This document shows, piece after piece, positions 12,770 through 58,088 of a DNA stretch of 64,000 nucleotides. The DNA comes from Schmidtea nova. Lineage: Eukaryota. Location of the stretch: NCBI GenBank assembly GCA_044892505.1, contig CM097882.1:121272001-121336000 (forward strand). The letters run 5' to 3'. Under the pieces are notes generated by a model. That model ran no database searches, was not told where the DNA came from, and saw only the letters and a list, made by a program, of their open reading frames with translations. The position numbers and the translations under genes are program-made. Position 1 is the first letter of the stretch. Each line of letters begins with the position of its first letter.

Positions 12770-14960
12770 AGTTTATTTTTAAAAATTTATGTCATTAATC
12801 GATATTTTTTAACTTAGTATACAAAAATTGTAACAACTCTTGTTTAATAACTATTTTTATTCTAAATAAATTTAATATTTACATGTGTTTTATTTACTAA
12901 ATTTATTTGTTGTTATTTGATCATTTCCTTAAAAAACATCATATTGAAAAACAATTAGATTTATATTTATTAGTTAAAAATTTTACTTGTGAAAAATATT
13001 TACTTTGTATCTATTAATTAAAAAATTTTACATTGATTTTATTGTTAAAAAATTCTACATTGACTTTATTGTTAAAACTTTTTACTTTAAAAAATTTTAA
13101 AAATAATTAATTATTCTCACATTTTTTCAAATATTACCTTAAAAAGTTCATTTGAAACCAATTCATTTTAAAATTATGACATTAAAACACACGTATTTCT
13201 TAATTTACTTTTTTTTATTCTTAATTTACTTATAATTCTATTTATCATTAAATTCATAATTATTTTTAAAATTCTATCTTTAATTTATTTACTTTACCAT
13301 TTTTCATAAATCCAGTACAAATTATTTTAAAATTCTAACTTTAATTTACTTATTATTTCCATGCTTTTATTTAATGTACTATTTTACTTGATAAATTCAA
13401 TACAAAATAATGAGTGAATTATTTACTGAGTTTTGAAATTCGTATAGTAATTATTTACTTTTTTATTTAATTATCATAAATTTATTTAGATTTAATTATT
13501 TAGTTAAAAAAAAATTTTTTTTTAAATATTTCCACGTTTTTAAGTATTTTACCTATTTTTACTGAGACTGACATTTCCCGTATAAAATTTTGATTTTTTC
13601 ATGATTTTAATTTTTTAACCTTTATTGTTCGCCTTTCAATTCTCAGTAGATTGGTATAAAAATTATTGAATTCTGTCCACTTTTTAATTTTTTTATTTAT
13701 GACCCTTTTTACGTGTAAAAATTGGTCGGATAAGTCAAAATTTTCATGTTTTTACTTTTTGACCCTTTTTTGTTTGCCATTCGATTCTCAATAGATTGGT
13801 ATAAAAATTATTTGATTCTGAGCCTTTTTGATTTTTTGGAATTTCCCCGAGTCGACCATTTTTACGTCAAAAATTGGGTCGGATAAGTCAAAATTTTCAG
13901 GTTTTACTTTTTGACCCTTTTTTGTTTGCCTTTCAATTCTCAGTAGGTTTGTATAAAAATTTTTGAATTCTGAGCATTTTTGATTTTTGGAAATTCTCCG
14001 AGTTGACCCTTTTTACATGTAAAAATTGGTCGGGTGAGATCAATTTTTCATGTTTTTTAATTTTTGACCATTTTTGTTTGCCTTTCAATTCTCAGTAGAT
14101 TGATATAAAAATTATTGAATTCTGACCACTTTTTAATTTTTTGATTTTCACCGACCAAAATATTATTTTCAAAAATACCAGACTAAAAATCCTATACAAA
14201 AATACGAGACCAAAAATCATATTTCAAAATTACCAGAGTCTCTTTTTGCCCGAGAAAATTGTTGGAATTGAAAATCCTATTCAAAATAATTTCAATGTAT
14301 TTTACTAGTTTCAAAAATATGCACGTGTTTTTTATTTACCATTAAAATATATATTTCAGTTCAAAATTACCAGAGTCTATTTTTGCCCTAGAAAATATCT
14401 GGGAGTAGAAAATCCTATACAAAATACTTTAAAGATAATTTACTTGTTTAAAAAATTTTCACGTGTTTTTTATTTACCATTAAAATTTCAGTTAAAAATT
14501 ACCAGAGTCTATTTTTGCCCTAGAAAAATATGGGAGTTGAAAATCCTATTCAAAATAATTTCAATGTATTTTACTAGTTTTAAAATTTATACGTGTTTTT
14601 TATTTACCATTAAAATTTCAGTTCAAAATACCAGAGTCCCTTTTTGCCTGAGAAAAATCTGAGAGTTGAAAATCCTATTCAAAATAACCAGACCAAAATC
14701 CTATACAAAAATGCCAGACCAAAAATTCATGTATAAAAATTTCCTGTAGAGTCCCTTTTTGCCCGAGAAAATCTCGGAGTTGAAAATCCTATACAAAATA
14801 ATAGGACTAAAAATCCTATACAAAAATACCAGACCAAAATATTGTATTCAAAAATCCAGATCAAAAAACCCAGAGTCCCTTTTTGCCCTAGAAAATCTCG
14901 GAGTAGAAAATCCTATACAAAATAACCAGAGTAAAAATCATTTACAAAATAACCAGATCA
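12770..14960 (-). repeat. Right arm of the ~2.2-kb internal inverted repeat
   Basis: Reverse complement of 7330-9505; mirror coordinates sum to ~22280. Confidence 0.9.
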
Positions 14961-18074: not shown

Positions 18075-19237
18075 ATGGCATCGAACCAACCAAACCCAAA
18101 CACTTCACAAACACCCATGGACAACGAAAATGCACAATCCCAACACCAAAACAACAATTATTATTACAACCCCGAAAACACACACACCATAAATTCGGTA
18201 ATTAACCCGAAACCCAACCTACCAAACTACTTCACTGACGAAAATGGCACTCCACAAAAATGGCTGGAATTTGCCAAATTAACACTAACAGTTTCAGGTA
18301 TAAAATCCACAAAACCGTATGCTCCAATATTATAGCCGCATTCCCAAGCAACAAACTAAATGAAATAGCGGATCAGATCGAAGAAATTTTTAAGGATGAC
18401 GACCCCTTTAACAAACTGTGTAACATCCTTACGTACAAAAATAAAATAAACAGGAGACAAATGCTAGAGTCATGCCTCAATAACACGCAACTAGGCGACA
18501 ACAAACCAACAGATTTTCTCCGACAACTCAAGCAAAAACTGGAATACCTCAAACCCAACATCACAAATTCAGGCTCCAACGAATTGGTGAAAGAATTTTT
18601 CATGCGAGCAATGCCACCAGAAATCAGGAGGATTCTGGCTGCCAGCAACAACGTTGATGTTGAAACGCTTGCCGATATAGCGAATAAAATCAACGAGGAA
18701 ATTTATCCGACTATATGCAGCACCCAAATCCACAACAAAAACAAAACTAACTACAATAACCCTTCATACAACAAAAATAACTAACAAAACGAAAACATGA
18801 ACAACCTACTAAACACTCTTATCGGCAAATTCGACGAAATAATTGTCGAAAACAAACAAATTAAAACAGAACTAGCCGAAATAAAAGAACGCTGTAATAA
18901 ACAGAACTTTAACTCAACGCAATCATACGATAATTACAACAGATACAACCACAGCAGAGACCAAACATCCAACGGTCAAAACAGACAATGCTACAATCAA
19001 CCCCCAGAATACAACAGACAAAACTACAGCCGCAGTCTATCACCAAACAACAATTACAGAAATCGGTCAAACTCCCCAAATCGAGGCAGCAATTACAGTA
19101 CCAAAAGTCCTGAAAGAGACCCAAGGAATAATTATATAAACAAAAGCCTCTGCTATTTCCACAACAAATTCGGTGAAAAGGCATTTAAATGCACACAACC
19201 CTGCGATTTCAATAAAACAGAGCAGGGAAACCAATAA
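18075..19237 (+). pseudogene. gag: gypsy gag, broken into three ORFs
   Basis: ORFs 18075-18335, 18260-18784 and 18797-19237; ELVKEFFMRAMPPEIRRIL motif and a C-terminal zinc-knuckle-like motif. Confidence 0.8.
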
Positions 19238-19245
19238 GGTCACAA

Positions 19246-21997
19246 ATGATAGCACCCACATCAGGTGACAAAAATAACACATTTTGGGTGCACAGCAATA
19301 ACATAGACTTTTTAATAGATACCGGCTCGGTGATCTCACTACTGCCCCATTTTATGTATAAAAGTGCCAACAAAACAGAAAAACCATTAACAGCAGCTAA
19401 CGGCACAAACATAAAAACTTTCGGGCAACAAAAAATAAATTTAAACATAAATAAAAAGAACTACAACTGGACATTCACCATAGCTGAGGTCCAACAAGCA
19501 ATAATAGGAGCAGATTTCCTAACAAATTACAACCTCCTAGTGGATTGTAAAAACAAACAAATAATAGAAAATATTACTTATACTACAATACCACAGTACA
19601 ACACAAGCAACGGAGGAAAACCAAAAATAGACATCGGTGTTATCCAAACGGGTTCACCTAACAATAAACAAAAACAAAAATTAATTATAAAATAAACTAC
19701 TGAGAAAATTCGAAAAACTAACCGAACTAGTAACCTTCGACAAAAACGCGGATCATTGCACCGAACATGCAATCATAACAAACGGAAACCCAGTTCATGC
19801 AAAGCTGAGACAACTAGATCCACAAAAAACAAAAATTACGAACGAAATTTTCAAGGAGTTACTAGAAAACAAAATAGTAACTCACTCGAACTCTAATTGG
19901 TCCTCAGCACTCATGCTCAAACAAAAGGCAAACGGGGAATGGAGAGCTTGTGGCGACTACCGAATGCTCAACAAAATCACGGAACCAGACAACTACCCGT
20001 TGCCTATCATCAGAGACATAATAAACAGATTAAAAGGAGCAAAACTCTTCTCGAAAATAGATTTACAGAAGGCTTACCACCATATACCTATCAGGAACGA
20101 AGACATTAAAAAACAGCAATCCTAACACCAATCGGCATGTTCGAGTACAACAGAATGCCATTTGGTTTGCGAAACGCAGCTGCAACATTTCAACGATTTA
20201 TGGACAAGACTTTGAAAAATAACCAGAACACAATAGCTTATTTGGACGACATCCTCATAGCAAGTCCAAGCAAAACAATTCATTTTAAAGACATTGAAAA
20301 GGTGTTTGAAACGCTGGACTCAGCAAACCTCAAAATAAACATTCAAAAATGCGAATTCTTGAAAAAAGAAATAAATTTTCTGGGACACACACTGGACGAA
20401 AAAGGCACGAAGCCAATAGACAAGAAAATAAGCACGATACAAGAGTTCAAATTACCGAACACAAACAGAGAGTTAAGACGATTTTAGGGAATGGTAAACT
20501 TTTACCATGCGTACATCCCTAACTGCAGTGAATTGTTAGCTCCACTAAACGACCTGATCAAAACAAGAAGAAATATTAAAATAAACTGGACCGAACAAAC
20601 AACTAAACAGTTTGAAAAAGCAAAAACAAGCCTATCTCAAGCAACATTACTCGGATATCCAAATCCAGAACTAGACTACAACCTAGCAACAGACTGCTCC
20701 GGATATGCAATGGGCGCAACCTTATACCAAGATAACGAACACGGCAAACAGCCAATCGGGTTTTTCTCAAAAAAACTAAAAACACATCAAACACGGTCAA
20801 ACTTTGGTAAGATGTCAGCAATGAAAACACACCAAGAATACTCTTACCAAAAGAGTTTAGGAAATTGTGTATTTCGAAAATACATGACATCAGCCATCCA
20901 GGAAACAAAGCCACCTTCGAAATAATCCACAACAGATACATATGGCCAAATATGAGAAAGAAAATCAAAAGTTTCGTAAAAACATGCAAAAAGTGCCAAA
21001 TCAACAAAATATCAAAGAAACAACAACACAAAAAGTAAACTTTCCAAGCAGCCAACCTTTCGAGATGATTCACATTGACATAGTAGGACCGTTACCACCA
21101 AACAACGGGTACAACTACCTACTCACAATCATCGACAGAAAAACAAACTGGTTCGAAATTGTCCCACTAAAAGAAATATCCGCTCAGAACATATGTAAAA
21201 AGATTGAGCTAAATTGGATAGCTCGCTACGGTCAACCAAAAGTATTGATAACAGACCAAGGGAGACAGTTCGAATCAGAATTATTCAGTACTCTGTGCAA
21301 TAAATACAACATAAAAAGAAACCGCGCAACCGCTTACAACCCTCAAGCAAACGGAAAAATCGAGAGATTGCACAGAACACTAAAGGAAAGTATCAGAACT
21401 AAAGCAGACGACAGGAATTGGCTAAGTCAACTCCCGACAATCTTACTGGGACTAAGAAACACACCAAACTCAATCGAAAATGAAAGCCCAGCATACAAAG
21501 TATTCGGCAGACAATCAAATCTCCCAACAATTAAAAACAATACAGGAAAAAACGCAGAAACCAACAAACAAACAACCAACACAAACAACGAAAGAGTAGA
21601 AAAGAAATTAAAAGGAATCCTAAAAAAGAGAGCGAACTCTGAAATGGACGGAAAAGTAGTTCTAACGACAGACTACGTATTAATCAAAAAGCCCTTCACC
21701 AAAGGTTTCGAACCAAAATATGAAGGCCCATTCAGATTGCTAGAAATTAATAAAAATGTTGCAACAATAATAAAAGACAACATCAAAATAAGAATCAATC
21801 TAAGACGGATAAAACCGTATCACAATAATCAAAACACTTCAAACGACCCCACAAAAGAAAAAGCCTCGACACAAACAAAAACACAAACAAAACATAAACA
21901 CATCACATTCAACTACAAAAATTCAATAAAATTATTCGACAAGGACTCAATAATCACACCTCTATACAAAAAACGCTACAGCGATTGCCTCAAGTAA
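19246..21997 (+). pseudogene. pol: gypsy pol (PR-RT-partial RH-IN) with frameshifts and an RH/IN deletion
   Basis: Domain motifs appear in gypsy order in ORFs 19246-19695, 19913-20125, 20137-20487, 20491-20925 and 20942-21997. Confidence 0.9.
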
Positions 21998-34409: not shown

Positions 34410-34830
34410 TTAATTTTTTTGTGCGAATTGAATGTTGATGGACGGTTTGTATTTTTTTATGTAAAAAGTCTCGGAAGCTAATCTTTGTAATGAATTTTTG
34501 AATCCCTCTTGTAGAATCTGGCATTTTGTTTCTTCTATAGATGGAGTTGTTTTATGTACTTTCTCCCAGTGTTCGTAATAATTACTGGTTTTGTTTTTAG
34601 TGTGTTCATTAAGTCGGGTGCGAAAAGTTCTATGTGTTTCTCCTATGTAAGTAGCGTCACATTTTTGACAAGAAAGTTTATATACTATATTTTTGGAAAA
34701 GCAAAAGCATCGGGTTGTGGAACGGCAAAGACATTTATGTTTGGAGATGTTGGAAATTGGTGGCTTTCGGAGTTGTGATTTTAACGGTGCGGAGGTTATG
34801 AACGTTGGACGGATGTGGATACTATCCACA
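34410..34830 (-). CDS. GIY-YIG endonuclease domain of the PLE (out of frame with RT in this copy)
   Basis: VYKLSC..C...YIGET.R...RL.EH...E..YI.K.KP.IN pattern. Confidence 0.88.
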
Positions 34831-34842
34831 TCCGTCCAACGT

Positions 34843-37050
34843 TCATAACCTCCTCCACTGGATAGGCAAATCTGTTTGATTAAAAATGTTTGTGATTTTG
34901 TTGGCTGTAGTGTCATTTAGGAAAGGTAATCTTAGATATGTTGTGTGTTTGTTATTGTTATTGTGTTTCTGGCGTTTCCTATTGTTGCGTTTATTGTGGT
35001 ATGGTTCGTTAAGGAAGTGTTTCTTTACAAAGTCTTCAGGGTATCCATTTTGGAGGAATCGTATTTTGAAGTTTTCTAATGTTTCTTGTATTTTGTTTGA
35101 GTCTGAACAGTTTCTTATGGCTCTTTTTCTTTCTCCTATTAGTAATGCGATTTTGCGTTGAAGTGGAACGTAGCTTTTCCATGGGAGGATATGACCACTA
35201 TGTAAACTTTTAGAATAAAGCTCGGTGTTTGCATTTAGTGTATCTTGGCCTTTTGTGAAACTTACCATGGTATCTAAAAACGGTATTTTACCTTCTGTGT
35301 TCGGTGTTTCAAAAGTGAATTGTATGTTGGTGTTAGTAGAATTTGCGTGTGATAGGATTTGATTGAGAGGGATTGTGGAGACTATGAAGATGTCGTCGAT
35401 GTATCGTTTCCAGAAAAGTATTTTATCCCCAAAAAAAGATATGATCTTAGATTCTATAAAGTTCATGTAGAAGATGGCTAAGATGGGAGAAAGGTTATTA
35501 CCCATGGCTAATCCATGAATTTGTTTGAATGGTTTTTCTTTAATTATGACAGTATCTGAATTTATTGCTAATTTTAGAAGTTCTATAAAGTCTTGTTTAG
35601 TTAAGTCTGCGAGGTCAGTGTTGGCTTTATGAGTTTCAAAGAAAGAAGCTGCGATATCGAAAATGTTATTCTCTCCGTGAAGAGGAATAGATCCGTAAAG
35701 ATTGGAAACGTCAAGAGATCCCCAGAAGTACTGTTGTCCTGCGTTTAACGGAAGAGATGTATTTGTAATTTCGGAGACGAATTCAGTTGTGTTTTTAAGA
35801 TGAGAAGGAACCAAAGGCAAAAGTGTTTTTAGGATTTCTGAAAGAACTTTAGAAAGTGTTGTGGAAGGAGTGTCAACTGCGGATACAAGAGGTCTTTCTT
35901 TTAAAGGACTTTTGTGGTCTTTAGGTAACATAGTCATATTACTAGGTAAGGGCTCACTACAGTTGCATTTTAAAAGTAAATCTTTGATTTGAAGGTTGAT
36001 TTGTTTATTTGCAAGTGTTGACAGTTTCTTATTGTATAAAATCTGAGTCGATGCAGGTAAGATTATTTTGTTTATTGGTTCATAGTTCGAGAGATGTTCT
36101 TCAAATAGAGTATTGTATTGTTCTGTGTCAAGGGAAATTAGTCGATTTGTTTTATCTGATGGAAGAATTGTGAAGTCTTTGGAATTCTTAATTTTCTTTA
36201 TGTTTGAAGTGAAAGAATTTTGTGTTGAGCAATGTTTTTCAAGAAAGATAATTTGTTCTCTGACTAAAGTTTTGACTTTAGTTTCTAAACAGCTGATTTT
36301 TTCTTCAAGTTCAGTCGAAAAGACAGGCATATTTGGATATGTTCTACGATTTGGATCCAGAAGATGATTGTGCTTTTCAGCTAAACTTGAAGATTTGGTG
36401 GATGAAATTGGTTTTAGATGGTAACCTATTTGTCTTCTTAGGCTTATAAGAGAGGCGTTAGTGATGACTTCGGCTTTTTCTAAATCTTTCTGGTTAGGTG
36501 GAGGAACAAAAGATGGTCCTAGAGCGAGGATATTTTCTTGTGTTTTGGAAAAAATGTGATTAGATTTGTTTGTAAATGGAAGAATTGAATTTGAGTGTGA
36601 GTATGAGTCTTTAGTGTTGTTTGGATTTGTTGAAAGTAGCGTTTCTAATTTTTTATGCTTGCGAATGTCGAGATTTTTGGAGAAATTCTGGCAACAAGTA
36701 TTATCTTCACAAGTAAGAGGAGCACAAGGAAAACTAGTAAATTCATTTAGCTTTTTGTAACACGCTGAAATGCTAAGTTTAAGCCATTCTTTTTCCTGTT
36801 TTTCCTTAAGCTTCAATGCTTGTGAAGATGGATAGGTTGATTCAAGTTTGTTGGTAACAGTCAGGCCCACGGGAATGATGTTTCTTCTTTTGCATTCATT
36901 TAAAAAATGTAAGTGTGATTTTATTTTGATGATTTTGAGACTATAAAATAACGATTGATCTACTCGGTGATGAGCGTCCGCCAATATACTATCATAATTA
37001 TCTTTTTTCACCTTTGATCTTTTTTTATTATTATTATCAATAATTCTCAT
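34843..37050 (-). CDS. Penelope-like reverse transcriptase (735 aa), separated from its endonuclease by a 43-nt fold-back insertion
   Basis: ORF track and RT motifs. Confidence 0.92.
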   Translation of the reverse strand: MRIIDNNNKKRSKVKKDNYDSILADAHHRVDQSLFYSLKIIKIKSHLHFLNECKRRNIIPVGLTVTNKLESTYPSSQALKLKEKQEKEWLKLSISACYKKLNEFTSFPCAPLTCEDNTCCQNFSKNLDIRKHKKLETLLSTNPNNTKDSYSHSNSILPFTNKSNHIFSKTQENILALGPSFVPPPNQKDLEKAEVITNASLISLRRQIGYHLKPISSTKSSSLAEKHNHLLDPNRRTYPNMPVFSTELEEKISCLETKVKTLVREQIIFLEKHCSTQNSFTSNIKKIKNSKDFTILPSDKTNRLISLDTEQYNTLFEEHLSNYEPINKIILPASTQILYNKKLSTLANKQINLQIKDLLLKCNCSEPLPSNMTMLPKDHKSPLKERPLVSAVDTPSTTLSKVLSEILKTLLPLVPSHLKNTTEFVSEITNTSLPLNAGQQYFWGSLDVSNLYGSIPLHGENNIFDIAASFFETHKANTDLADLTKQDFIELLKLAINSDTVIIKEKPFKQIHGLAMGNNLSPILAIFYMNFIESKIISFFGDKILFWKRYIDDIFIVSTIPLNQILSHANSTNTNIQFTFETPNTEGKIPFLDTMVSFTKGQDTLNANTELYSKSLHSGHILPWKSYVPLQRKIALLIGERKRAIRNCSDSNKIQETLENFKIRFLQNGYPEDFVKKHFLNEPYHNKRNNRKRQKHNNNNKHTTYLRLPFLNDTTANKITNIFNQTDLPIQWRRL

Positions 37051-44067: not shown

Positions 44068-44958
44068 TGTGAAATATGGTTATTATGATGCTAGTTGTGA
44101 ACACACGCAATTTCTTTGCAATTGTTTAATAGCGATATAGTTTTATTATTTACAATTGATTTATTGGTGAAGATATTATTGAGAAGTGTTATCGGCTGAT
44201 ATTGGTATAGTTTATTCAGATCACTGTTATTCATCTTATCATGAAAGACGAACTTTTTATCGACTAAAGTTACTCACCATAGATTAGAATGTATTAAATG
44301 GTGATTCCTTGGCAGCAGCATTAAGTATTAAATGAATTAATAAATAACTAACAAAATAAGCTTTTGCTGCAAAAACATTTTTATTAAACGAGAAACTTCG
44401 ATTTTAAAATAATACTTGTCAATCCCTAATTCAGCATATAACTGGTATCTTCATTCATTTCTGCTGTTTCTTTCTCGTGAATTATCTTCTTTTTCATTGG
44501 ATGTTAATCTGATTAATATGAATTTTAAATATTAAATTGTTTTTTAAATGTTTTTTGTTAAAAATTTAAAAATATAAAAAAACTCTAAAATTTAAAATTC
44601 TGTCTAAAGATTTTTATCTTTATCTTTTTTAAAATTTAACCTTTTTAAAATTTAAAATTTTTTCTTTTATTGTCTGTATTTTACATTTCAATTTTCCAAC
44701 CCTTTACATTTGAATTTTTTTAAATTTAATTATATCTATTTGAAATGCCCATATATTCTCTGTACTATCTCTTTTCTTCCATTTTTTCCTTTTCACTTTC
44801 TTCTTTGTAGAACCACATGTTTGAAATATTGTTATTATGATGCTAGTTGTGAACACACGCAATTTCTTTGCAATTGTTTAATAGTGATATAGTTCTATTA
44901 TTTACAATTGATTTATTGGTGAAGATATTATTGAGAAGTGTTATCGGCTGATATTGGT
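44068..44958. repeat. ~140-bp direct repeat (44068-44206 and 44818-44958), the 3' end of the second PLE
   Basis: TTATTATGATGCTAGTTGTGAACACACGC...GGCTGATATTGGT is present twice. Confidence 0.8.
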
Positions 44959-45649: not shown

Positions 45650-47512
45650 AACCCGTATGTTGGAGTGTCCTCGATGCAGAAAAATCTAAATGGAAATCAA
45701 ATTGAGAAGCCAAGTAAGACAAGTGGAATGTTGGACATGCCACAAAGTTTGACACGTTAGCAGGAACTGCAATTTAAAAAGAGAAGTTCAATGTTTGTCT
45801 TGTGGCGGCGATGGCCATATCAGACGAAATTGTCTAACGATACAATGTAGAAGGGGTAACGTCGGGTATATAAAGAGAGCGAGTGTTACACTAACCTTGA
45901 AAGACGGAATCAAACGGTGAATCAAACGGGGAATAGCTATGGATATAGAGAACCGAGATAACACAGGCAATTTGATGTGCAATAAACGAGATTCCCAAGA
46001 AGAAAGAACAACGTATAATTCAATAAAAGAAAATAGCCGCCTTTGAAAACTAAGATGACAAATCACCAATGAAATACGAAAACGAGATAAATCTATATGA
46101 TGACGAAGAATACCCTAAATATTAAGCTCCACCAAGAGAAGCTTTGATAGGAGCTATATGTTTGTGAGCTATGATTGTATGAATGTAATGAATGTGAATG
46201 ATAATAAAATTATAAATATAAATAATAAAGTAAATAATATAAATATTAAAGTAAATAATATAAATAATGAATTAAATTATAAAGTTAATAAAACCCAAAC
46301 GTATAAAAATAATATTCGAAATGCAATAGAAACAGATATCAGAACACTGGAAAAGTAGATAATTTCTTGAAGAAAGAAATAGTAAGAATCAATGAAATTA
46401 CGGAAACGATATTAGAAAGAGAGGATCATAGGATAATGTATAATAGGATTCAAGGTAGACCAAGTGTGATGCTGAATATAAAATGTTGGAAAATAAATTG
46501 TTTATTAGATACAGGAGTACGAGTGAACGTAATAGCAAAGACAGTTGTGGATAAATTAGATAAAGTAGAAATAATCGAAACCGGTGAATTATTAAAATGT
46601 GCGAATGATAGCAAACTAGAAACTTTAAGTAAGTTATATACTGGAGTTAAAATTGGCGATGTAGAAAGAAATGTATCATTTATTGTTGTTAAAAATATTG
46701 TTCCAGAGATAATTGGAGGAGTTGAACTACAAAAAAGCATTTGGAATAAAACTGGTATGGAACGACGAGAACAGAAAAAGCAATAGTGAATTTATTTGTG
46801 AGATTAAAGCACAATTCGGAAGAAATATATCAGATAACAAAAGAATGAAAAACGCGATATAGAAATTAAAAGTCACAGGAAATACAAGACTCCTAGAAAT
46901 TGTGAAAAATAATAAAAATGTTTTTATGGCAGACAAATGGGATATTGGATGTACAGACCTCATTGAACACAAGAATGTGACAAAAGGAGAAGCGATGATG
47001 ATAAAACCTAGACGACAATAAATAAATCTAAAATTAAAATAGAAAATGCAATAAAAAACTTAGAGAAAAACGATGTTATTAAGAAATGTAATTCGCGTTG
47101 GAACACACCATTATTATGTGTATGGAGAAAAGAGAAAAGAGATCAGATCAGATCATGCTTAGATTTCAGACAACTTAATAAAATAACAGAAAGACAAGCT
47201 TTTCCAATGCCAAACGTTGATGAAATTCTGGATACTCTACACTGGTCGAACTATTTCAGCTCAATAAACTTGGGAAATGCTTGCTACCAAGTAAAGTTAG
47301 ATAAATAATCTCAGGAAAAGACAGCATTTTTGACAAAAGAGGGACAATTTTGCTTAAACAGAATATCTTTCTGTATTGCAGCAGCAACCAAGCCCTTTCC
47401 AAGAACTTATGACCAAAGTATTAAATGAATTATGGAAAGATGGAGTAATGGTATATCTAGATGATATATTGATATTTACAAAAACAATAAAAGAACATTA
47501 TAATATACTAAG
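45650..47512 (+). mobile_element. Decayed gypsy element, 5' part (gag knuckles, protease, RT to YLDD)
   Basis: CWTCHKV*H and CLSCGGDGHIRRNC knuckles; CLLDTG protease; DFRQLNKIT; VMVYLDDILIF. Confidence 0.88.
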
Positions 47513-48767
47513 TGGATCGGCGCATCCAGCTCCTTTTGATTTCCTCATTTTTTGGACTGAGAACGCGAGATTTAATCATAGACAAATTGAAATTCTCATC
47601 ACTATCCGGCAAAGGATATCCATCGGGATTGGTAAACATATCTAATATTTCCGTGCTATTATTAGTTGGCTCGGTTGTTTTACTGTCCAGTGGAACACCG
47701 TCAACATCTAATGGCTCACCGTCATAATCGACAAGAGGTTTAACACGCAGCACATTTTCTTCGTCAACAAATTCCACTCGGTATTTCAAATGAGTATCAA
47801 ACGGTTCTACTTTTTCACCTGGTTTGATATTAGCTCCATTTCGGTGAAAGAAACACACAATGTCTTCCATTTCAAGTTTAAGGCCGCTAACTGGAACTCG
47901 GACATAATTAACATAAGTGCCATTGACACTTTGATCAGACAACCAAAACGAAAGATCATCAGCATTGTATTTTAATGTAGCATGCAATCGACTGAATGTG
48001 CTCAGTAACATATCGGCGTCATTCTTTTTCATTTGCATAATTGTAGGCAGAAATGAGCTGTGTGTCTTGCACAATATTTGAATCAAATTCTTGTAGATAT
48101 TCCGAAATTGCGGTGGAATTGTTTTCGGGCCTTCAATCAAGAGAAAAAGAGCTAAATTCTGATTAAGAGATGAGAAAATGTTCAAAAATTCCAAAGTAAT
48201 CGGATCAGATTTCTGATTGGCTGCTGCTGTTGATGGAATTGATGCATTATTGATGTTTAATTTTTTATTGAATGTATCGGATATATCACAGGAATGCCGT
48301 GATTGTTGAGGTAGCATAGAATAAACGGATGGGAATTCAGATTTCTCCAATTGATAACTTTGAGATCGATTGAGATTGGTTTTACGTGGAAATCCGATTT
48401 CATCTTCTGCTTTCATGAATTCCAATTGGAGGAACTCCCAAATGTTTGAGGAGCATTTCAATGAGTCGTAACAGATGAGTTTATATTCAGCCGCTGTTAA
48501 TATTTCGATATTTCCATGCCGATTGGCCAGATCTTTCCAATGAAACAGGAGATGCTTTAAAATATTGATATCTGAATGTGCCATCAACAGAACGTCGGGC
48601 TCACCACCGAGAAATGCAAAGGCAAAATCATTTAGTGAATTCAAATCAGAAACCCAATCAAATTCAAGTCGCTCCCAAAAAATTATATCTTCAATAAAAT
48701 GAATCCCTGATGAAATATTTGAAACGACAGATAAACCGTTCAAAGATGGTAGAGAAGATAATTCCAT
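47508..48767 (-). CDS. 419-aa LTR-encoded ORF (unknown N-terminus plus partial FHA); stop codon supplied by the target site
   Basis: SRLHATLKY...[16 protein letters not shown]...LEMEDIVCF is the C-terminal half of an FHA domain. Confidence 0.75.
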   Translation of the reverse strand: MELSSLPSLNGLSVVSNISSGIHFIEDIIFWERLEFDWVSDLNSLNDFAFAFLGGEPDVLLMAHSDINILKHLLFHWKDLANRHGNIEILTAAEYKLICYDSLKCSSNIWEFLQLEFMKAEDEIGFPRKTNLNRSQSYQLEKSEFPSVYSMLPQQSRHSCDISDTFNKKLNINNASIPSTAAANQKSDPITLEFLNIFSSLNQNLALFLLIEGPKTIPPQFRNIYKNLIQILCKTHSSFLPTIMQMKKNDADMLLSTFSRLHATLKYNADDLSFWLSDQSVNGTYVNYVRVPVSGLKLEMEDIVCFFHRNGANIKPGEKVEPFDTHLKYRVEFVDEENVLRVKPLVDYDGEPLDVDGVPLDSKTTEPTNNSTEILDMFTNPDGYPLPDSDENFNLSMIKSRVLSPKNEEIKRSWMRRST

Positions 48768-50078
48768 GTTTTCAGAAAAATTAACTCAAATACAATTTAC
48801 ACAAAAAAACCGAAATTCAAAATAAACAACACTTTTAAAGATTTTTATTCAAGATTTCAAAAAACCCCCAACACATTATAAAAACCGTGACGCAGTCAAA
48901 CAAAACAACCACAAGTCTTTTAATTCCACCATTTCCAAAAAAAAACTTCTTTAATCCAACTTCAACAACTCGCGTCTGTGTGCGCACCCCCAGTTGATTC
49001 TGATGATCTCTCTAACAAACAACTCAAATTTGGTGCATTTTGCTTCGTTATATTAATTGTAGTCAGTTTACATTGTTCAATATCATTATAAAAATTCAAA
49101 ATATCATCACTTTGACTCTTAATAAAAGATTTATCAACTTCATTTATGTTTTTACCGTAAGTATTTTTAATTGCATTTTGAAATTGTTTTGCTTTATCGC
49201 AACCGAGTTCCCCGCTTATAATTGCCCATTTATCAGTAATATTATTATCTTCGTTGAAATAGATAGACAGAAAACGTGCAAAAGAAATGTCAAATGTTTC
49301 ATTCATTTGTGCAATTTCCGGTAGAAATTGTACAATAGTGGATTTGAGTTTTTGTAATTTAATATTCAGGTTTTTCTCGAGAATTATTAATAAATTATAG
49401 TTATTACTCACATTTATTCCACTCAAAGGGATATTGAGGGAGTTTTCAATGATTTTATGAGAAAATGATTTGAGAAATATTTTTTCTTGGTCAGTGTTGG
49501 TAAATTTTTTTTAACTTTTTACTAATGTGAAATCGAATCCATCGAATTATTTCCATTACTCGTACATCAGTTATTATATTTAAATCAAATTTCTCTTTGA
49601 ATTCTGTGCTAAGATTAGAAAACTGAATTCCAATATTTTCATCGGCATCAAATTGACATTTGGAAATGAATTTCATTAAACTACCTGGTATTTTATTGTC
49701 GTTAATATTAGAAGAACATTGTTGAGCTTCATTGACATCATCAAAGGGCATAAATTTTTTCAATTTTACAAAGCCAGAAAACTTTTTTATGTCACTTAAT
49801 GAAGAACGAACAGATTTTAAAAGATGACCAATTTCTTCAAATTCTGAAACATTGAATAGGCAATATCCGGAAAATGGATGTAGATAATATTCATTTATCT
49901 TTTTGAAATTGCAAAGTAATAGTGGTAATCACGCATATAAGATTTATATAGATTTCGATAAGACCGTCTAACGGCTTCCAGGCTCGCCCCACAATCTCTC
50001 ATAGCGATCAAGCACCCAATTAATTATTTTAATTATTATTTATTTAATTTTAAAAATATTTTAGAGCGGGCGCGACCA
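47513..50078 (-). repeat. 3' LTR (2566 bp)
   Basis: Same length as 53631-56196 and identical translations of all ORFs; preceded on the minus strand by the PPT. Confidence 0.95.
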
Positions 50079-50091
50079 TTCTCCCCCCTTT
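50079..50091 (-). promoter_or_regulatory. Polypurine tract AAAGGGGGGAGAA abutting the 3' LTR
   Basis: Purine run directly 5' of the TG that starts the 3' LTR on the minus strand. Confidence 0.9.
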
Positions 50092-50166
50092 GACATTCTG
50101 TCAACATCAACACTTCATCCACTTCTCTCTTTCTCCATGACCAGTAAACTCTCCACGAGTCCTCCT

Positions 50167-53100
50167 TTAATTCCAAATGTGGAAGACTCGCCACCTTTTC
50201 CTTTTTATCACCTCAGGAGGAAGTATTTCCTTCCAATCAATTCTTTGCATCCATGCCTCTTGCATGATGCCTTTATTTATTAGTTTTGCAACTGTGTAAA
50301 ACATTATCCGAACCTTTGTAATTTCCCCATCACGCCCCACAACCGGACTATGCAGCATACACCATTTTGTTCTATTTTCCTTTAAATTAACTTCTAATTT
50401 GATCAACTGACTCTCAATTAATTCTTCAACTCTTTTTGATTCGATCAATTCTTCGCCAGTCTTCATTACATTGTTAGAAATAGAAATTTCCCCTTTGGTA
50501 ATTATTTCCAATTTCCTTGAGACTTCTTTAACCAACTCCATGTTAGTACTAAGTCCCATTTTCAAGAAATCTTTTTCTATCATTAAAGATTTCAAGTTTA
50601 ATTTAATATTTTCAATCATTCCCAGACTGTCATTTAGTTTAATTATTAAATTACCATTTACTTCCGTCAAATCCTTCACCAAGGTTTGCTGAGAAGCGAT
50701 TTCGTCATTAGCCGCTCGAAGTTTTTCTAGGTAATCACTTTCCTTTTCTTTCATCTCCACATTTAAATGCCTTTCTTTCGCAGTAAGCTCATTTAAATAG
50801 ATTTCATTTCGTTCAATTTTTATTTCTAGTTCTCGATTTACAGCTGCCAATTTAACATTAATATCATTTACATTTTCTATCTCAGCTGACAACGTTTCTA
50901 CAGTTTCAGCCAAATTCTCTAATTTTACTTCTGATTCATTAATTTCCTTTTTACGTTCTAATTCGATCGTTTCTATTTTCTTTTGAAGAACTTCTATTTT
51001 TAAATGAAGCTGTGTTATTAAACCTGACTTGTCAGCAAGAGAGTGTTTTGTTTCGATTTCATAATTCCTCAAATTCGTTTCCTGCTCACCCTTGTGAGCT
51101 TTAACTAATGCCAGCTCGTCAAATAATTTTGAATATTCTTCAAATAAAGATTCCAATTTACTTTGAATTACATTCTTGCTTTTTGATAAATTCTCATAAT
51201 TAACCATGCAAGATTTCATTTTCGTCTCTAAATCGGCCACCTCCGTTTCTCTCAATTTTAACGACATTGTCTTGCTTCTTTCTTTTTCTAATTCCAATTC
51301 CATTTTATTTTTTCTATTTTCGAATTCAATTTTATCCTTTAGTTCTTCATTTATCAAATTCCCATTTTTCTCTTTCAAACTATTTATTTCTTTGTTCAAT
51401 TCTGAAAATGTTCTTTCTGACGATACCTCTATGGACAGAAATGTACTTCTTCCTTCTTCTTCCATTGTCCTGGAAATACCTTGATTCTTATTCTTCCAAG
51501 ATGGTTTCACCTCTATTTGCTCATTTCTAGACGCTACTCGGTGATCGGTGAAACCATATACTTCTTCCAACACGTTCCGCTTCATTTCTGCTAACTGCGA
51601 TATCCATTCAGTGACTGCTTCTACATTCTTTTCCTTTCTATTCTCCGCTCTCCATTTTGCCCACTGGAACACTAAATCCTCAGGTAATTTCTTTATTAGC
51701 GCCTGATATAGAAATCTACTTTCAATCTCATTTTTCTTGCCCAGCGCTTTAAGCCTTATCATCACTGAACTTATTAACTCTTGAAAGGCTTCCAGTTCAC
51801 CAATCGAATCTGACTGAACAGGATTAAAGCGATTTAATTCCTCCGAAATTGCGAGAAAACCTCTTTCTACACCTCCATATCGCCTGTCCAACCACGCCAA
51901 GGCTGCTTCATACGCATCTGCTGTAAACCCCAGTTGATTTACAACCCTATGTGGTTCATCCTTTAGAGATTGCTTTAAATGCAGCAACTTCTCTACCTTT
52001 GTTCCAAAGGCCGAATCCACACAGGCATCAAAGGTGGCTCTCCACTGAGCATATTCCAACGTTTTCCCATTGAACACTGGGATTTCTATCTTCTTTAATT
52101 TTTCCAACCGTTTCAATACCAAACCTTCCTGACTTTTCCCCTTGGCTCTAAGAATCTTTTCTTCCTGGACTAGTAAATTCGGTTCTTCTATCTCTTGGCT
52201 TTTAATGCTTCTGTCCATCATTCTTTTTTCTGGAAAGCGATTCGCTTCGTTTACTGTGCTTTTGTCTATCTCTAATCTTCCTAAATGTTCATTTTGCTCT
52301 TCGATAGCATCTAATTCCTGATCAAAGCGTCTGGCAGCTTCCAGGTCCCCCAACTCTTCTGCTAAGCTCTTTAGCCTGCTCCAATCCTCCAGCACTTCAT
52401 CAAAGTCTTCTTCGTATTCCTCTTGACGTTGCACGCGATCCGCTTCCGACAGGTATTCTGAGGCTCTCCTGAATAGTCTGGTGAGGTGCGTCTTCTGAAC
52501 GCAGAGCTTCTCGATCCCATTCTTTAGCTGCAACTGTTTGTCTTGGGTTTTCATACCTCCTCGTAATCTCAACCCCAAATGCAAGGTAGATTCCCTTTGC
52601 ATATTATAATAACATAATGTTCGTCCGTCTTCCAGTTGTTTTCCAGCGAAGATCAACCTTTGCTGGTCAGGCGAAATACCTTCTTTGTCTTGTATTCTCG
52701 CTTTTACATTCTCGATTGTGTCACTTGATTCAACTTCCAGGGTAATAGTTTTCCCTGATAAAGTCCTCACAAACATCTGTATACCACCTCTCAATCGTAA
52801 ACCCAATTGCCAAGTTGACTCCGTTTTATTCTCTTTCATTCGCGGACTATACTCTTTTAAACCTGTACTTGCATCACCACTTGGCCTTGAATAACAACAC
52901 AAACATTCCGCTACTTTAGCTTTATTTACACTGTCTTCACGAATACCTAATTTAATATTTTTAGCAAAATGATCATACAAATTTTTATAATTAGCTTCGT
53001 ATTGTATTATTCGTACAATACGTTCTAAGACTTTTCCCCCTAACTCTTTTCTGAATACTTTCAAAATTCTATTTTGTTGCAACATTTCCCGGTTGGTATT

Positions 53101-54885
53101 CAATATAAAATCTCCCCTGATATAACCGGTCCACCTACTAACCTCTACACCTTTAAATCTCGAGTTATCTTTTCCTATACATATTGCTTCATAAGCAGGT
53201 GACACAATTTTATCCCTTTGTCTATTTGATTCATCAAATGATCTTTTCTTATTTTTTGTTTTATCAAAATCTTTAGTTAAAGTTTGCTTTTCACCACATA
53301 CAAGTTTTGTGGGATTATCATAAGTATCCCTAAGTTTCTCACTAAAGGGCATGCTTGATTTATCACTACGGCTACCATCAAGCTTAATAACCTGTTTCAA
53401 ATACGTATTTTCAGGTGACCCATCCTTTTCGTTCTCAGACCCAACTGAGCATAAGGGAAGGGGATGGTCGCGGGGGCCCATTACCGCGCTAAATTCCCCC
53501 ATTAAATTCATTATTAATTTTAAATTTTTAATGTTTTTAGAAAAATATGCGGCGCTGTGACCACTATAAGCAATTAAGAAGCTTACCCGCCGTGCGTGGC
53601 CCCCCGAAGGGAACCACGCTCTGCTACCAATGGATCGGCGCATCCAGCTCCTTTTGATTTCCTCATTTTTTGGACTGAGAACGCGAGATTTAATCATAGA
53701 CAAATTGAAATTCTCATCACTATCCGGCAAAGGATATCCATCGGGATTGGTAAACATATCTAATATTTCCGTGCTATTATTAGTTGGCTCGGTTGTTTTA
53801 CTGTCCAGTGGAACACCGTCAACATCTAATGGCTCACCGTCATAATCGACAAGAGGTTTAACACGCAGCACATTTTCTTCGTCAACAAATTCCACTCGGT
53901 ATTTCAAATGAGTATCAAACGGTTCTACTTTTTCACCTGGTTTGATATTAGCTCCATTTCGGTGAAAGAAACACACAATGTCTTCCATTTCAAGTTTAAG
54001 GCCGCTAACTGGAACTCGGACATAATTAACATAAGTGCCATTGACACTTTGATCAGACAACCAAAACGAAAGATCATCAGCATTGTATTTTAATGTAGCA
54101 TGCAATCGACTGAATGTGCTCAGTAACATATCGGCGTCATTCTTTTTCATTTGCATAATTGTAGGCAGAAATGAGCTGTGTGTCTTGCACAATATTTGAA
54201 TCAAATTCTTGTAGATATTCCGAAATTGCGGTGGAATTGTTTTCGGGCCTTCAATCAAGAGAAAAAGAGCTAAATTCTGATTAAGAGATGAGAAAATGTT
54301 CAAAAATTCCAAAGTAATCGGATCAGATTTCTGATTGGCTGCTGCTGTTGATGGAATTGATGCATTATTGATGTTTAATTTTTTATTGAATGTATCGGAT
54401 ATATCACAGGAATGCCGTGATTGTTGAGGTAGCATAGAATAAACGGATGGGAATTCAGATTTCTCCAATTGATAACTTTGAGATCGATTGAGATTGGTTT
54501 TACGTGGAAATCCGATTTCATCTTCTGCTTTCATGAATTCCAATTGGAGGAACTCCCAAATGTTTGAGGAGCATTTCAATGAGTCGTAACAGATGAGTTT
54601 ATATTCAGCCGCTGTTAATATTTCGATATTTCCATGCCGATTGGCCAGATCTTTCCAATGAAACAGGAGATGCTTTAAAATATTGATATCTGAATGTGCC
54701 ATCAACAGAACGTCGGGCTCACCACCGAGAAATGCAAAGGCAAAATCATTTAGTGAATTCAAATCAGAAACCCAATCAAATTCAAGTCGCTCCCAAAAAA
54801 TTATATCTTCAATAAAATGAATCCCTGATGAAATATTTGAAACGACAGATAAACCGTTCAAAGATGGTAGAGAAGATAATTCCAT
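50167..54885 (-). CDS. 1572-aa chimeric polyprotein: unknown - partial FHA - Hsp90 fragment - Ub tail + ubiquitin - Pao Gag - coiled coil - Pol remnants
   Basis: Single uninterrupted ORF; each domain recognised by motif (see the sub-features). Confidence 0.88.
50210..50364 (-). other. In-frame BEL/Pao Pol remnants (RT N-terminal motif fused to a connection/peptidase A17-like segment)
   Basis: [22 protein letters not shown] resembles WYLPHHPV.K....TKLRIVF; [18 protein letters not shown] resembles ..LQ.LW...LDWD..LP. Confidence 0.7.
51560..52554 (-). other. gag: BEL/Pao Gag region (DUF1759-like)
   Basis: [28 protein letters not shown]...KLLHLKQSL...[13 protein letters not shown]...IKKLP. Confidence 0.88.
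52555..52782 (-). other. Captured ubiquitin (76 aa), preceded by the tail of another Ub unit (52783-52821)
   Basis: [12 protein letters not shown]|[76 protein letters not shown]|M. Confidence 0.97.
52825..53127 (-). other. HSP90: Captured, diverged Hsp90 middle-domain fragment
   Basis: [19 protein letters not shown]...[31 protein letters not shown]...[12 protein letters not shown] vs Hsp90 LNISREMLQQSKILKVIRK...[31 protein letters not shown]...SLKDYCTRMKEN. Confidence 0.93.
53612..53629 (-). promoter_or_regulatory. Primer-binding site TGGTAGCAGAGCGTGGTT (complementary to the tRNA-iMet 3' end)
   Basis: 1 nt downstream of the 5' LTR's terminal CA. TGGTAGCAGAG complements the conserved animal initiator tRNA end CTCTGCTACCA. 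Confidence 0.88.
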
Positions 54886-56196
54886 GTTTTCAGAAAAATT
54901 AACTCAAATACAATTTACACAAAAAAACCGAAATTCAAAATAAACAACACTTTTAAAGATTTTTATTCAAGATTTCAAAAAACCCCCAACACATTATAAA
55001 AACCGTGACGCAGTCAAACAAAACAACCACAAGTCTTTTAATTCCACCATTTCCAAAAAAAAACTTCTTTAATCCAACTTCAACAACTCGCGTCTGTGTG
55101 CGCACCCCCAGTTGATTCTGATGATCTCTCTAACAAACAACTCAAATTTGGTGCATTTTGCTTCGTTATATTAATTGTAGTCAGTTTACATTGTTCAATA
55201 TCATTATAAAAATTCAAAATATCATCACTTTGACTCTTAATAAAAGATTTATCAACTTCATTTATGTTTTTACCGTAAGTATTTTTAATTGCATTTTGAA
55301 ATTGTTTTGCTTTATCGCAACCGAGTTCCCCGCTTATAATTGCCCATTTATCAGTAATATTATTATCTTCGTTGAAATAGATAGACAGAAAACGTGCAAA
55401 AGAAATGTCAAATGTTTCATTCATTTGTGCAATTTCCGGTAGAAATTGTACAATAGTGGATTTGAGTTTTTGTAATTTAATATTCAGGTTTTTCTCGAGA
55501 ATTATTAATAAATTATAGTTATTACTCACATTTATTCCACTCAAAGGGATATTGAGGGAGTTTTCAATGATTTTATGAGAAAATGATTTGAGAAATATTT
55601 TTTCTTGGTCAGTGTTGGTAAATTTTTTTTAACTTTTTACTAATGTGAAATCGAATCCATCGAATTATTTCCATTACTCGTACATCAGTTATTATATTTA
55701 AATCAAATTTCTCTTTGAATTCTGTGCTAAGATTAGAAAACTGAATTCCAATATTTTCATCGGCATCAAATTGACATTTGGAAATGAATTTCATTAAACT
55801 ACCTGGTATTTTATTGTCGTTAATATTAGAAGAACATTGTTGAGCTTCATTGACATCATCAAAGGGCATAAATTTTTTCAATTTTACAAAGCCAGAAAAC
55901 TTTTTTATGTCACTTAATGAAGAACGAACAGATTTTAAAAGATGACCAATTTCTTCAAATTCTGAAACATTGAATAGGCAATATCCGGAAAATGGATGTA
56001 GATAATATTCATTTATCTTTTTGAAATTGCAAAGTAATAGTGGTAATCACGCATATAAGATTTATATAGATTTCGATAAGACCGTCTAACGGCTTCCAGG
56101 CTCGCCCCACAATCTCTCATAGCGATCAAGCACCCAATTAATTATTTTAATTATTATTTATTTAATTTTAAAAATATTTTAGAGCGGGCGCGACCA
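53631..56196 (-). repeat. 5' LTR (2566 bp), with a TATA-like TATATAAA about 130 nt from its start and internal ORFs
   Basis: Direct repeat of 47513-50078, followed by the PBS. Confidence 0.95.
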
Positions 56197-56201
56197 CTAA
56201 G

Positions 56202-58088
56202 GATGGTATTAGAAAAGATCTCACTGGCAAAATTAAAAATTAATCCAGAAAAGTGTCAAATATTAAAAAAGAAGTTAGGTTTCTTGGACATATAATAAAC
56301 AGCGAAGGGATCCGAACAGACCAAAGTAAAATAGAAGCGATACAGTCTTTTAAAAGACCAAAATGCACAAAGAACTTAGGAAGTGTTTTAGGAATATGCA
56401 ATAATTACATACAATTTATTAAAGAATATACGAAGAAAGTTAGAGTGTTGGAAAGTATATATGGAAAAGATAATGAAAGATTAATGTGGACAGAAACATG
56501 TCAGATAGCATTCGAAGAAATAAAAAAGGTATTCGTGATGGCATCGGTGTTAGCATTTTAGAAGAGAGTTTATTCTGGACACAGGCATTAGTTTTGATGC
56601 AATTGGAGCGGTACTTTCTCAAAAGTATGATTCTGGATATGAACACGTTATTGCTTATGTATATCATGCAATGAGTAACCATGAAAAAGGCTACTGTATA
56701 ACGAGGAAAGAATTACTGGCAATATATTACTTCTGCAAAAGTTTAAATCACTATTTATTTGGGAAAAGATTTTTATTGAGAGCAGATCATAAGGCTATTA
56801 CCTTTATTTTGACAACGAAAAAGCCAATAACAGCACAATTTCTAACTTGGATCAATCATTTAAGCAGCCTTGATATAAAGATGGAATATAGGAAATGCAT
56901 TGATCATGGAAATGCGGATATCCTGTAAAGGAAAACGTGCGGAACATGTATACAATGCAAGATAGAACACGAAGAACCGAAAAGCGGACGAGTAAAAACA
57001 AGGTTATTGACAGTAACAACGGAAGGCAGCGTAAATAAGTGGCGAAACAGTAATGATGAGATAAAAGAAATAAAGAATGAAATATAAAAGTACAAGAATG
57101 GAAGATTCATCATAAAAGAAAATACAATATATACGAACAAGAACAAACTATGGACACCAAAATCGAAAAGACGAAATATGATCAAGGAGACGCATTCAAC
57201 GCAATGCTATGCAGGAACACAGAAAGTAACAAACTATATCCAACAAAATTTCAACATGGAAGATTTGGTAAAAGAAGTAAAATCAGTAATTGAAAACTGT
57301 ATTGCGTGTCAGAAAACGAAGACACTTACCATAGAGACAAAAGAAGAAGATTTTAGATGATCTATGTGGATATATGTGGATCAGTGAAAGAAACAATCAA
57401 AAGAGAAAGATACATATGTGATATCATTGACCATTACTGTAAATACATTTCTCTGTCTGCTATAGCTAAACAAGATGAAAAAACAATATTGAATATTTTG
57501 CTAAACAAATGGATATTAAGATGTTGAGCACCGAAAAAACTGCATGCAAACTGTGGGAAGTGTTTTGAGTCAAACTGTATAAAAGAATTTGCAAAGTCAA
57601 AAGGAATCGAAATAGTGTTTTCAGGTCCATATCACCAAAACACCAATGGATAAATAGAAGGGCAGTTTCGCACAATCAGAGATTATATTAACGCGTCGTT
57701 AAAAGAACAAAGCAGAAAAAGTTGGGCAGAGACATTACCGGAAATTGAATATACCTTGAATGCGATAATACAGAAAACAAGTCCGGTAGAAATCATTTTT
57801 GGAAGGAAAATTAACAGATCAGAATGGTATAGCAGTACTTCAATAGATAAAGAAAGAAAGATAAAAAGCAAGAAAACGGAAGTATCAAACGCAAAAGAGA
57901 CCAAAACAACAAGAATTTTCAATAAATGAGATACTCTATAAATAAAACGTGAGATTCGAAATAAAAAATTTGAAGGACCATATACAATAATAAAGAAAAT
58001 TCAAGAAAGAAGCTATTTTTTAGAAGATGAAGAAGGCAAAACCATAAAAAGAAATATCGAAAAAATGAAAGATTTTAAAAAAGGAGGA
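56202..58088 (+). mobile_element. Decayed gypsy element, 3' part (RT end, RNase H, integrase, PPT)
   Basis: KEVRFLGHII; YCITRKELLAIYYF...FLLRADHKA; integrase YVDICG...GPYHQNTNG. AAAAGGAGGA PPT followed by TGTGA at ~58089. Confidence 0.88.

Follow-up and report, generated by a model that had tools for sequence, protein, structure and literature searches.

A stretch of 64,000 nucleotides from Schmidtea nova (contig CM097882.1 of assembly GCA_044892505.1, positions 121,272,001 to 121,336,000; here called the window) contains a young long terminal repeat (LTR) retrotransposon, which was inserted very recently and which carries a mosaic open reading frame (ORF). As judged by alignment, a ubiquitin unit ending in LRLRGG is located in this ORF directly before the canonical methionine of a BEL/Pao Gag protein, and the same kind of junction recurs in a second Pao polyprotein, designated P0066. 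This is a new observation, and is absent from an earlier note on the same DNA. We consider it probable that the element is a non-autonomous BEL/Pao derivative, built up as a mosaic by template switching and mobilized in trans, with its reading frame kept open and with a ubiquitin-Gag module. The identity and origin of the element are the firmest part of this description, and are put forward with high confidence.

Ubiquitin at the start of Gag

The full ubiquitin unit of the ORF is identical to PDB polyubiquitin at 64 of its 76 positions, and its LRLRGG end adjoins Met 778. This methionine aligns with residue 1-2 of P0028, a Pao polyprotein that has no ubiquitin, and is therefore the canonical Pao Gag start. 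In sequence terms this is the arrangement of a cleavable ubiquitin fusion, with a C-terminal LRGG directly before the downstream protein. A protein search with the whole ORF is dominated by polyubiquitin matches.

A 12-residue tail of another ubiquitin unit precedes the full one. Both have Gly in place of the canonical Val in the C-terminal strand, though the Gly codons differ, and the tail departs from the corresponding part of the full unit in 10 of 36 bases. The source was probably an already divergent polyubiquitin-like gene with adjacent repeats. Dating of the capture from the divergence of the ubiquitin sequence was considered and dropped, since both units carry the same non-canonical Gly.

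P0066 is an intact-looking Pao polyprotein of 2576 residues, encoded on a 10.2-kb ENA contig. Its order is a kinesin motor fragment, a Sec23/24 trunk plus beta-sandwich, a low-complexity stretch, a ubiquitin-like domain, Met 801 and Gag, followed by DUF1758, a stretch from the start of reverse transcriptase (RT) that aligns with a remnant in the mosaic ORF, Peptidase_A17, an integrase zinc domain and DUF5641. The ubiquitin-like domain (Pfam E = 6e-9) ends in LKLRGG before Met 801, and is far more diverged than the one described here. Upstream of Gag, P0066 is an in-frame mosaic of about 800 residues, which includes the AT-rich low-complexity stretch, and its content of F, Y, M, I, N and K (33%) suggests that the source is AT-rich. 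No peptide that could be encoded by a tRNAiMet primer-binding site (PBS) was found in P0066.

P0066 and the mosaic ORF are colinear through the ubiquitin/Gag junction. Common to both are unrelated host fragments joined in frame, a ubiquitin-type domain with an intact LRGG, and the Gag methionine. This suggests that the position of ubiquitin matters, whether the two elements share a common ancestor and the ubiquitin was replaced, or whether there were two captures at one spot.

Both proteins also contain the pentapeptide GPRDH, at residues 470-474 of the ORF and 718-722 of P0066, which is too short to be significant. In P0066 it lies a few residues before the ubiquitin-like domain, and in the ORF about 45 residues past the PBS. 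A further protein, P0026 (JGI, 6.8-kb contig, 2032 residues), has three ubiquitin stretches, the last of which ends in LRLRGG and is followed some 900 residues later by an RT. Nothing in it is Pao-like beyond the ubiquitin, and judged by its composition it would come from GC-rich DNA; it may hint at a wider occurrence of ubiquitin in retroelement polyproteins. We found no report in the literature of ubiquitin fused to Gag in BEL/Pao, and a survey of the group (PMC3118150) makes no mention of ubiquitin.

Gag and the remnants of pol

Descent of the element from BEL/Pao, as proposed in the earlier note, is supported by the sequence of Gag. It contains a DUF1759 domain (PF03564, E = 1.9e-12), and is 30% identical to P0028 (BLASTP E = 1e-30), 35-38% to P0066 (E = 5e-68) and 34% to P0067 (E = 3e-36). 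P0028 and P0067 match both Peptidase_A17 and RVT_1, the RVT_1 match of P0028 being below the Pfam cut-off; P0066 matches Peptidase_A17, and its RVT_1 is taken from its precomputed Pfam list. Two short remnants of pol, in the last 80 or so residues of the ORF, align colinearly with P0028 and P0066. The E values of these alignments are 2e-4 to 5e-3.

The earlier note had also stated that no intact protease (PR), RT, RNase H (RH) or integrase (IN) is present. Pfam indeed finds none of them in the ORF, and there is no room for them elsewhere in the 3552-bp internal region. The element is therefore classified here as Pao-derived, and not as an autonomous member of BEL/Pao. Three stretches of pol have been lost, namely the nucleocapsid (NC)/PR region, which has been replaced, the core of RT, and RNase H through integrase. 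The pol sequence that remains contains neither a stop nor a frameshift.

The position of NC/PR is occupied by the foreign helical stretch listed in Table 1, whose GC content is 31%, compared with 43% for Gag. Searches of the protein collection and of PDB gave no homologue for it. In a structural model of ubiquitin plus Gag, Gag is predicted to be helical with good confidence (predicted local distance difference test, pLDDT, about 80-87). A capsid-like fold was not found for the Gag model: both fold searches gave ubiquitin matches alone.

Captured host fragments

At least five host sources can be recognized in the element: an N-terminus like that of P0045, a TCF19-like gene, HSP90, ubiquitin and Nop56. 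The piece from each is partial, without introns and in sense orientation, which is the pattern expected of a retroposition chimera, and all six of the recognizable fragments are in sense.

The FHA piece is located within the LTR and hence present in two copies. It is identical in 76 of 81 residues to P0033, an FHA+PHD protein encoded on an environmental contig that resembles a transcript. At the DNA level there are 44 base differences, of which 39 are at third codon positions, and the piece is therefore conserved coding sequence that has undergone little decay. Its named relatives are without exception from Platyhelminthes (Cichlidogyrus, Calicophoron, Paragonimus, Fasciola, Hymenolepis, Schistocephalus and Schistosoma). 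On this evidence the host is probably a flatworm, and the GC content of 29% and the match to an environmental sequence suggest that it may live freely.

The start of the ORF matches P0045 from the first methionine onwards, and is probably a captured host N-terminus. P0045 is encoded on a small genomic contig, and at a single place it is longer than the ORF by 14 residues. It is possible that these represent an unspliced intron, in which case the start codon of the ORF would come from a captured, spliced host mRNA.

The HSP90 piece and the ubiquitin tail are separated by a single residue. The Nop56 fragment lies upstream of the ORF, has one frameshift, and is missing its 3' half. Its NOP5NT domain is recognized by Pfam (E = 1.3e-14), it matches Nop56 chains in PDB with E values down to 1.7e-8, and the match to the Nop domain is weak.

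The long reading frame

Residue n of the ORF begins at window base 54885-3(n-1). The ORF starts 1311 bases into the 5' LTR, such that its first 418 codons are LTR sequence, and the junction between LTR and PBS is translated in frame, reading RRS on the LTR side and IGSRAWF beyond it. The earlier note was thus correct in describing an ORF of 1572 codons that starts within the 5' LTR and passes this junction without a stop. There are no in-frame stops, where about 124 would be expected from the composition; the other two frames contain 143 and 159. Each segment of the ORF, taken singly, is open in the frame of the ORF alone.

This is true also of the parts that resemble nothing else. Residues 54-256 and 339-591 are free of stops despite 16-18 being expected in each, and have no homologue in 1.84 billion protein representatives or in PDB. 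A Pfam scan of the whole ORF found no domain in these two regions at an E value of 0.01, and none in residues 430-600 at an E value of 1 either. The AlphaFold model of residues 1-345, made without an alignment, had a pLDDT of 33 and was discarded.

The earlier note counted at least six unrelated pieces in the ORF. The count was too low, as there are at least eight, and Nop56 comes in addition to these, being located in the LTR upstream of the ORF. The pieces of the mosaic are joined at no fewer than eight junctions, all of them in frame, the chance of which is about 1.5e-4. On balance we incline slightly to the view, put forward in the earlier note, that continuity of the frame has been under selection.

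Structure of the element, insertion site and surroundings

The coordinates of all features are collected in Table 1. The element lies on the minus strand of the window. Its structure is that of an LTR retrotransposon, with direct repeats of the TG..CA type flanked by a target-site duplication, a PBS at the 5' LTR and a polypurine tract at the 3' LTR. These features were described in the earlier note, as a CTAAG duplication, 2566-bp repeats, a tRNA-iMet PBS and a polypurine tract, and checking of the coordinates and matches bore out all four. The two LTRs align in register with the same base at 2566 of 2566 positions, end in TGG..CCA and have CTAAG on either side. With no differences in 2 x 2566 bp, the insertion must be very recent, and the exact identity that the earlier note wished to see checked supports recent transposition. 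No further copy of the LTR or of the internal part is present in the 64-kb window.

The PBS begins one base past the 5' LTR. Positions 53629-53619 match the initiator tRNA in 11 of 11 positions, and the match extends to 53612 with 16 of 18; the reference is a published reverse primer (bioRxiv 10.1101/2021.12.17.473132) directed at the human tRNAiMet 3' end, and thus a human sequence rather than that of the host's own tRNA.

Table 1. Features of the element and of the pol gene into which it is inserted. Positions are those of the window.
Feature	Positions	Strand	Basis
Target-site duplication CTAAG, left copy	47508..47512	no strand	repeat-end comparison
3' LTR (element orientation), 2566 bp, identical to 5' LTR	47513..50078	(-)	
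FHA piece, second copy, in 3' LTR	47754-47996	(-)	
Polypurine tract, 13 nt, touching 3' LTR	50079..50091	(-)	
Internal region, 3552 bp, nearly all taken up by ORF	50079..53630	(-)	
Mosaic ORF, 1572 codons plus stop, from 5' LTR interior to 88 bp before 3' LTR	50167..54885	(-)	
Pao pol remnants (RT start and stretch after RT), as one part	50188..50430	(-)	
Proline-free helical stretch rich in E, K and L, about aa 1130-1485	50431..51498	(-)	
Pao Gag, Met 778 to about aa 1112; DUF1759 at 51655-52074	51550..52554	(-)	
Ubiquitin: 12-residue tail (aa 690-701) and full unit (aa 702-777)	52555..52818	(-)	
HSP90 middle-domain piece, aa 592-688, equivalent to human HSP90-alpha 393-489	52822..53112	(-)	
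PBS, complementary to 3' end of initiator tRNA-Met, within ORF	53612..53629	(-)	
5' LTR, 2566 bp	53631..56196	(-)	
FHA piece of TCF19-like FHA+PHD host gene, aa 257-338, sharp edges, 243 bp	53872..54114	(-)	
ORF start, residues 1-53, matching from Met 1 the start of the 76-aa protein P0045	54727..54885	(-)	
Nop56-derived fragment in upstream half of LTR: NOP5NT and start of Nop domain	55083..56046	(-)	
Target-site duplication CTAAG, right copy	56197..56201	no strand	repeat-end comparison
Decayed Ty3/gypsy pol, left part: PR, then RT to profile position 169/205	46313..47512	(+)	
Same gypsy pol, right part: RT end, RNase H, IN zinc domain	56197..57357	(+)	

The element is inserted into the RT of a decayed Ty3/gypsy pol gene. 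When the two flanks were compared separately with the other gypsy element of the window, they were found to be colinear to within about 8 bp, and the insertion therefore splits the gypsy RT without large loss, in agreement with the clean split that had been claimed. Apart from the nested insertion, the reading frame of the split pol is interrupted in at least four places, and an integrase core was not detected in it.

The gypsy-like element used as the yardstick for this comparison is located at 18260-21997 (+). It has several ORFs (protease-like, RNase H and integrase core) and a strong skew of A over T. Upstream of the split gypsy there is a direct repeat of 137 nt, 98% identical, at 44070-44206 and 44822-44958, the copies being 752 bp apart. 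A Penelope-like element at 34413-37050 (-) consists of a 735-aa RT ORF followed by an overlapping 168-aa GIY-YIG nuclease ORF, both open. Exact look-ups of three ORFs of the window, one of them from the Penelope-like element, retrieved no record. At 7439-8684 there are tandem arrays with units of 114, 138 and 152 bp, whose reverse complements are present about 5 kb away at 13596-14957. The two sets form a foldback-like pair of long inverted ends, and between them, at 10176-10841, is a C-rich array of 117-bp units with a GC skew of -0.51. The window contains ten runs of N between 6992 and 38202 (2103 bases in total), which are masked or gap stretches; the element and its vicinity are free of them. 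Scanning the window for Rfam families and for tRNA genes gave no matches. The host DNA is AT-rich, with 29% GC.

Discussion

Proposed origin and working of the element

The mechanism proposed here is drawn from the anatomy of the element and from work on retroposition chimeras (PMC5131818). Repeated template switches of RT onto co-packaged host mRNAs would have rebuilt both the LTR and the internal region, which would explain why the fragments are partial, lack introns and are all in sense. The signals needed in cis have been kept, namely the LTR ends, the tRNAiMet PBS and the polypurine tract, and the ubiquitin-Gag module has been kept as well. In the standard model of reverse transcription, an insertion into U3 or U5 is copied to both LTRs in one replication cycle, and gene-bearing LTRs therefore need no special mechanism. 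The enzymes of an autonomous relative would have copied and inserted the element in trans. This is the natural conclusion for an element without enzymes of its own, and the combination of missing pol enzymes, identical LTRs and an intact target-site duplication is what is expected of a non-autonomous element that has recently transposed.

Ribosomes that start upstream must reach Gag, and we therefore infer that only in-frame captures survive. Deubiquitinases are known to release proteins from natural ubiquitin fusions. If host deubiquitinases cut after the GG, they would free an authentic Gag from whatever peptide precedes it, and captured coding sequence could then be tolerated in the 5' region. 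Such a release of Gag by cleavage, suggested by analogy, is the least certain step of the scheme, and is proposed tentatively.

Several observations weigh against this scheme. The junctions 3' of Gag are also in frame, although production of Gag requires none of these. If transcription begins downstream of 54885, then some of the ORF remains untranslated. The Nop56 fragment is outside the ORF and yet is stop-free within its frames, and so a rule that what is translated stays open does not by itself explain its openness. The ubiquitin unit carries 12 changes, one of them in the C-terminal strand, and AlphaFold models the ubiquitin with low confidence; the polyubiquitin from which it was taken was probably itself non-canonical, and thus its divergence cannot date the capture. 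The ubiquitin-Gag junction is known from two elements, and one copy of the present element has been seen. An autonomous partner sharing these LTR ends has not been identified, the source genome not having been searched, and the nearest relative is no more than 35-38% identical. Finally, the locus was chosen for its ORF, and is therefore subject to ascertainment bias.

In an alternative account, which we consider unlikely but worth serious attention, the element is the same defective, transducing Pao element, whose long ORF is an unselected by-product and whose ubiquitin is a passenger from an abundant mRNA: the captured pieces would be recent copies of coding sequence that are in frame by luck, and nothing before the Gag methionine would matter. 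HSP90, polyubiquitin and Nop56 are all abundant mRNAs and so likely to be co-packaged. The almost undecayed FHA piece, a ubiquitin divergence that is probably older than the capture, the openness of Nop56 and the way in which the locus was picked are all in keeping with it. It is harder to reconcile with at least eight junctions that are all in frame, given the low probability of this by chance, or with 253 open codons running over the LTR end, the PBS and the leader, where some 18 stops are expected. P0066, moreover, independently has its long in-frame mosaic ending in a ubiquitin-like LRGG directly before a methionine. For these reasons selection on the frame remains our slightly preferred explanation.

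The ORF is long and intact, and LTR-mediated retroposition is a known source of new chimeric genes (PMC5131818). It might therefore be supposed that this is a host chimeric gene formed by retroposition and now retained for a host function, with the LTRs merely marking its origin. This we regard as very improbable, since the identical LTRs, the intact target-site duplication, the PBS and the polypurine tract indicate a very recent insertion, the location is inside a dead gypsy element in a transposon-dense stretch, the pieces are partial domains that are unlikely to fold, and there is no similar annotated or predicted protein among 5.8 billion clusters. A false duplication of a 2.6-kb block during assembly would also be expected to give perfect identity between long repeats 6.1 kb apart. 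The ends of the repeats, however, fit the TG..CA termini, the 5-bp duplication, the PBS, the polypurine tract and the colinear split of the gypsy RT to the base, which makes a mis-join of this kind extremely improbable. A recently mobilized Pao derivative is thus the reading retained here.

Comparison with known systems

The earlier note knew of no described element with this architecture. That claim does not stand, in view of the Pao/BEL chimeras and maize Bs1 in PMC5131818, and of the PBS within GAG in Ty1 (PMC4974528). Template-switch chimeras are known in animals, including Pao/BEL, and so the architecture is not unprecedented. The closest in kind are the chimeras formed by LTR-mediated retroposition, or 'pseudo-LTR retrotransposons' (Tan et al. 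2016, PMC5131818). They include cases in the Pao elements BATUMI and BEL18_AG, can join two or more parental genes, and can transpose again as non-autonomous elements. Like the present element, they have partial intron-less pieces of mRNA in place of internal ORF sequence and keep both LTRs. The present element differs from those described there in having at least five host sources plus a helical stretch, in having fragments inside the LTR as well, and in having a single frame from the LTR to the pol remnants.

Maize Bs1 is a non-autonomous LTR element that contains partial exonic sequence from three host genes (cited in PMC5131818). In a survey of maize, no LTR element was found to combine fragments from two or more genes. 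The stacking of five or more is therefore unusual. Bs1 is a plant element of another superfamily, and Elrouby and Bureau reportedly described its host fragments as fused with gag in one reading frame. To our knowledge it lacks ubiquitin, its LTR is free of gene fragments, and none of its ORFs starts in the LTR.

P0066 resembles the present element in the LRGG before the Gag methionine, in its in-frame host fragments (kinesin and Sec23/24), and in its Gag, which is 35-38% identical. It differs in having retained PR, RT, IN and the Peptidase_A17 region, and in that its host fragments are different ones.

Replication-defective transducing retroviruses capture host mRNA by copy-choice, lose pol, fuse the captured sequence in frame with Gag and depend on a helper. 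They carry one functional host gene that gives the cell a selectable phenotype, whereas here there are many partial domains, none with an evident function of its own.

The closest parallel found for the junction is the capture of ubiquitin by pestiviruses. In their polyproteins, host ubiquitin RNA has been acquired by recombination directly upstream of a viral protein, on independent occasions and often as a mosaic. Cellular enzymes cleave after the GG and so free the downstream protein. A pestivirus is an RNA virus without reverse transcription, and the downstream protein is a different one; cleavage is demonstrated there, whereas here it is inferred. Ty1, finally, is primed by tRNAiMet and has its PBS inside the GAG ORF (PMC4974528). 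It belongs to the Copia superfamily, and has few codons before the PBS, compared with 418 codons of host-derived LTR sequence here.

Significance

Capture of host mRNA by LTR elements is recognized as a way in which new chimeric genes arise. Few examples are known from animals, and in most of these one or two genes are involved. The present copy is so young that all of its junctions can still be read, and it shows capture inside the LTR.

The recurrence of the junction between ubiquitin LRGG and the Gag methionine in two distant Pao elements suggests that a host protease system may be used to define the N-terminus of the capsid protein. It is conceivable, though we consider it doubtful, that a sublineage of BEL/Pao in AT-rich invertebrate (flatworm-like) genomes carries ubiquitin fused to the start of Gag as a permanent feature. 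If this were true, deubiquitinases would trim away the products of upstream translation, and fragments of host genes could be accepted in the leader, and even in the LTR, with Gag left intact. Pao elements of this type would then take up, shuffle and carry host exons unusually freely.

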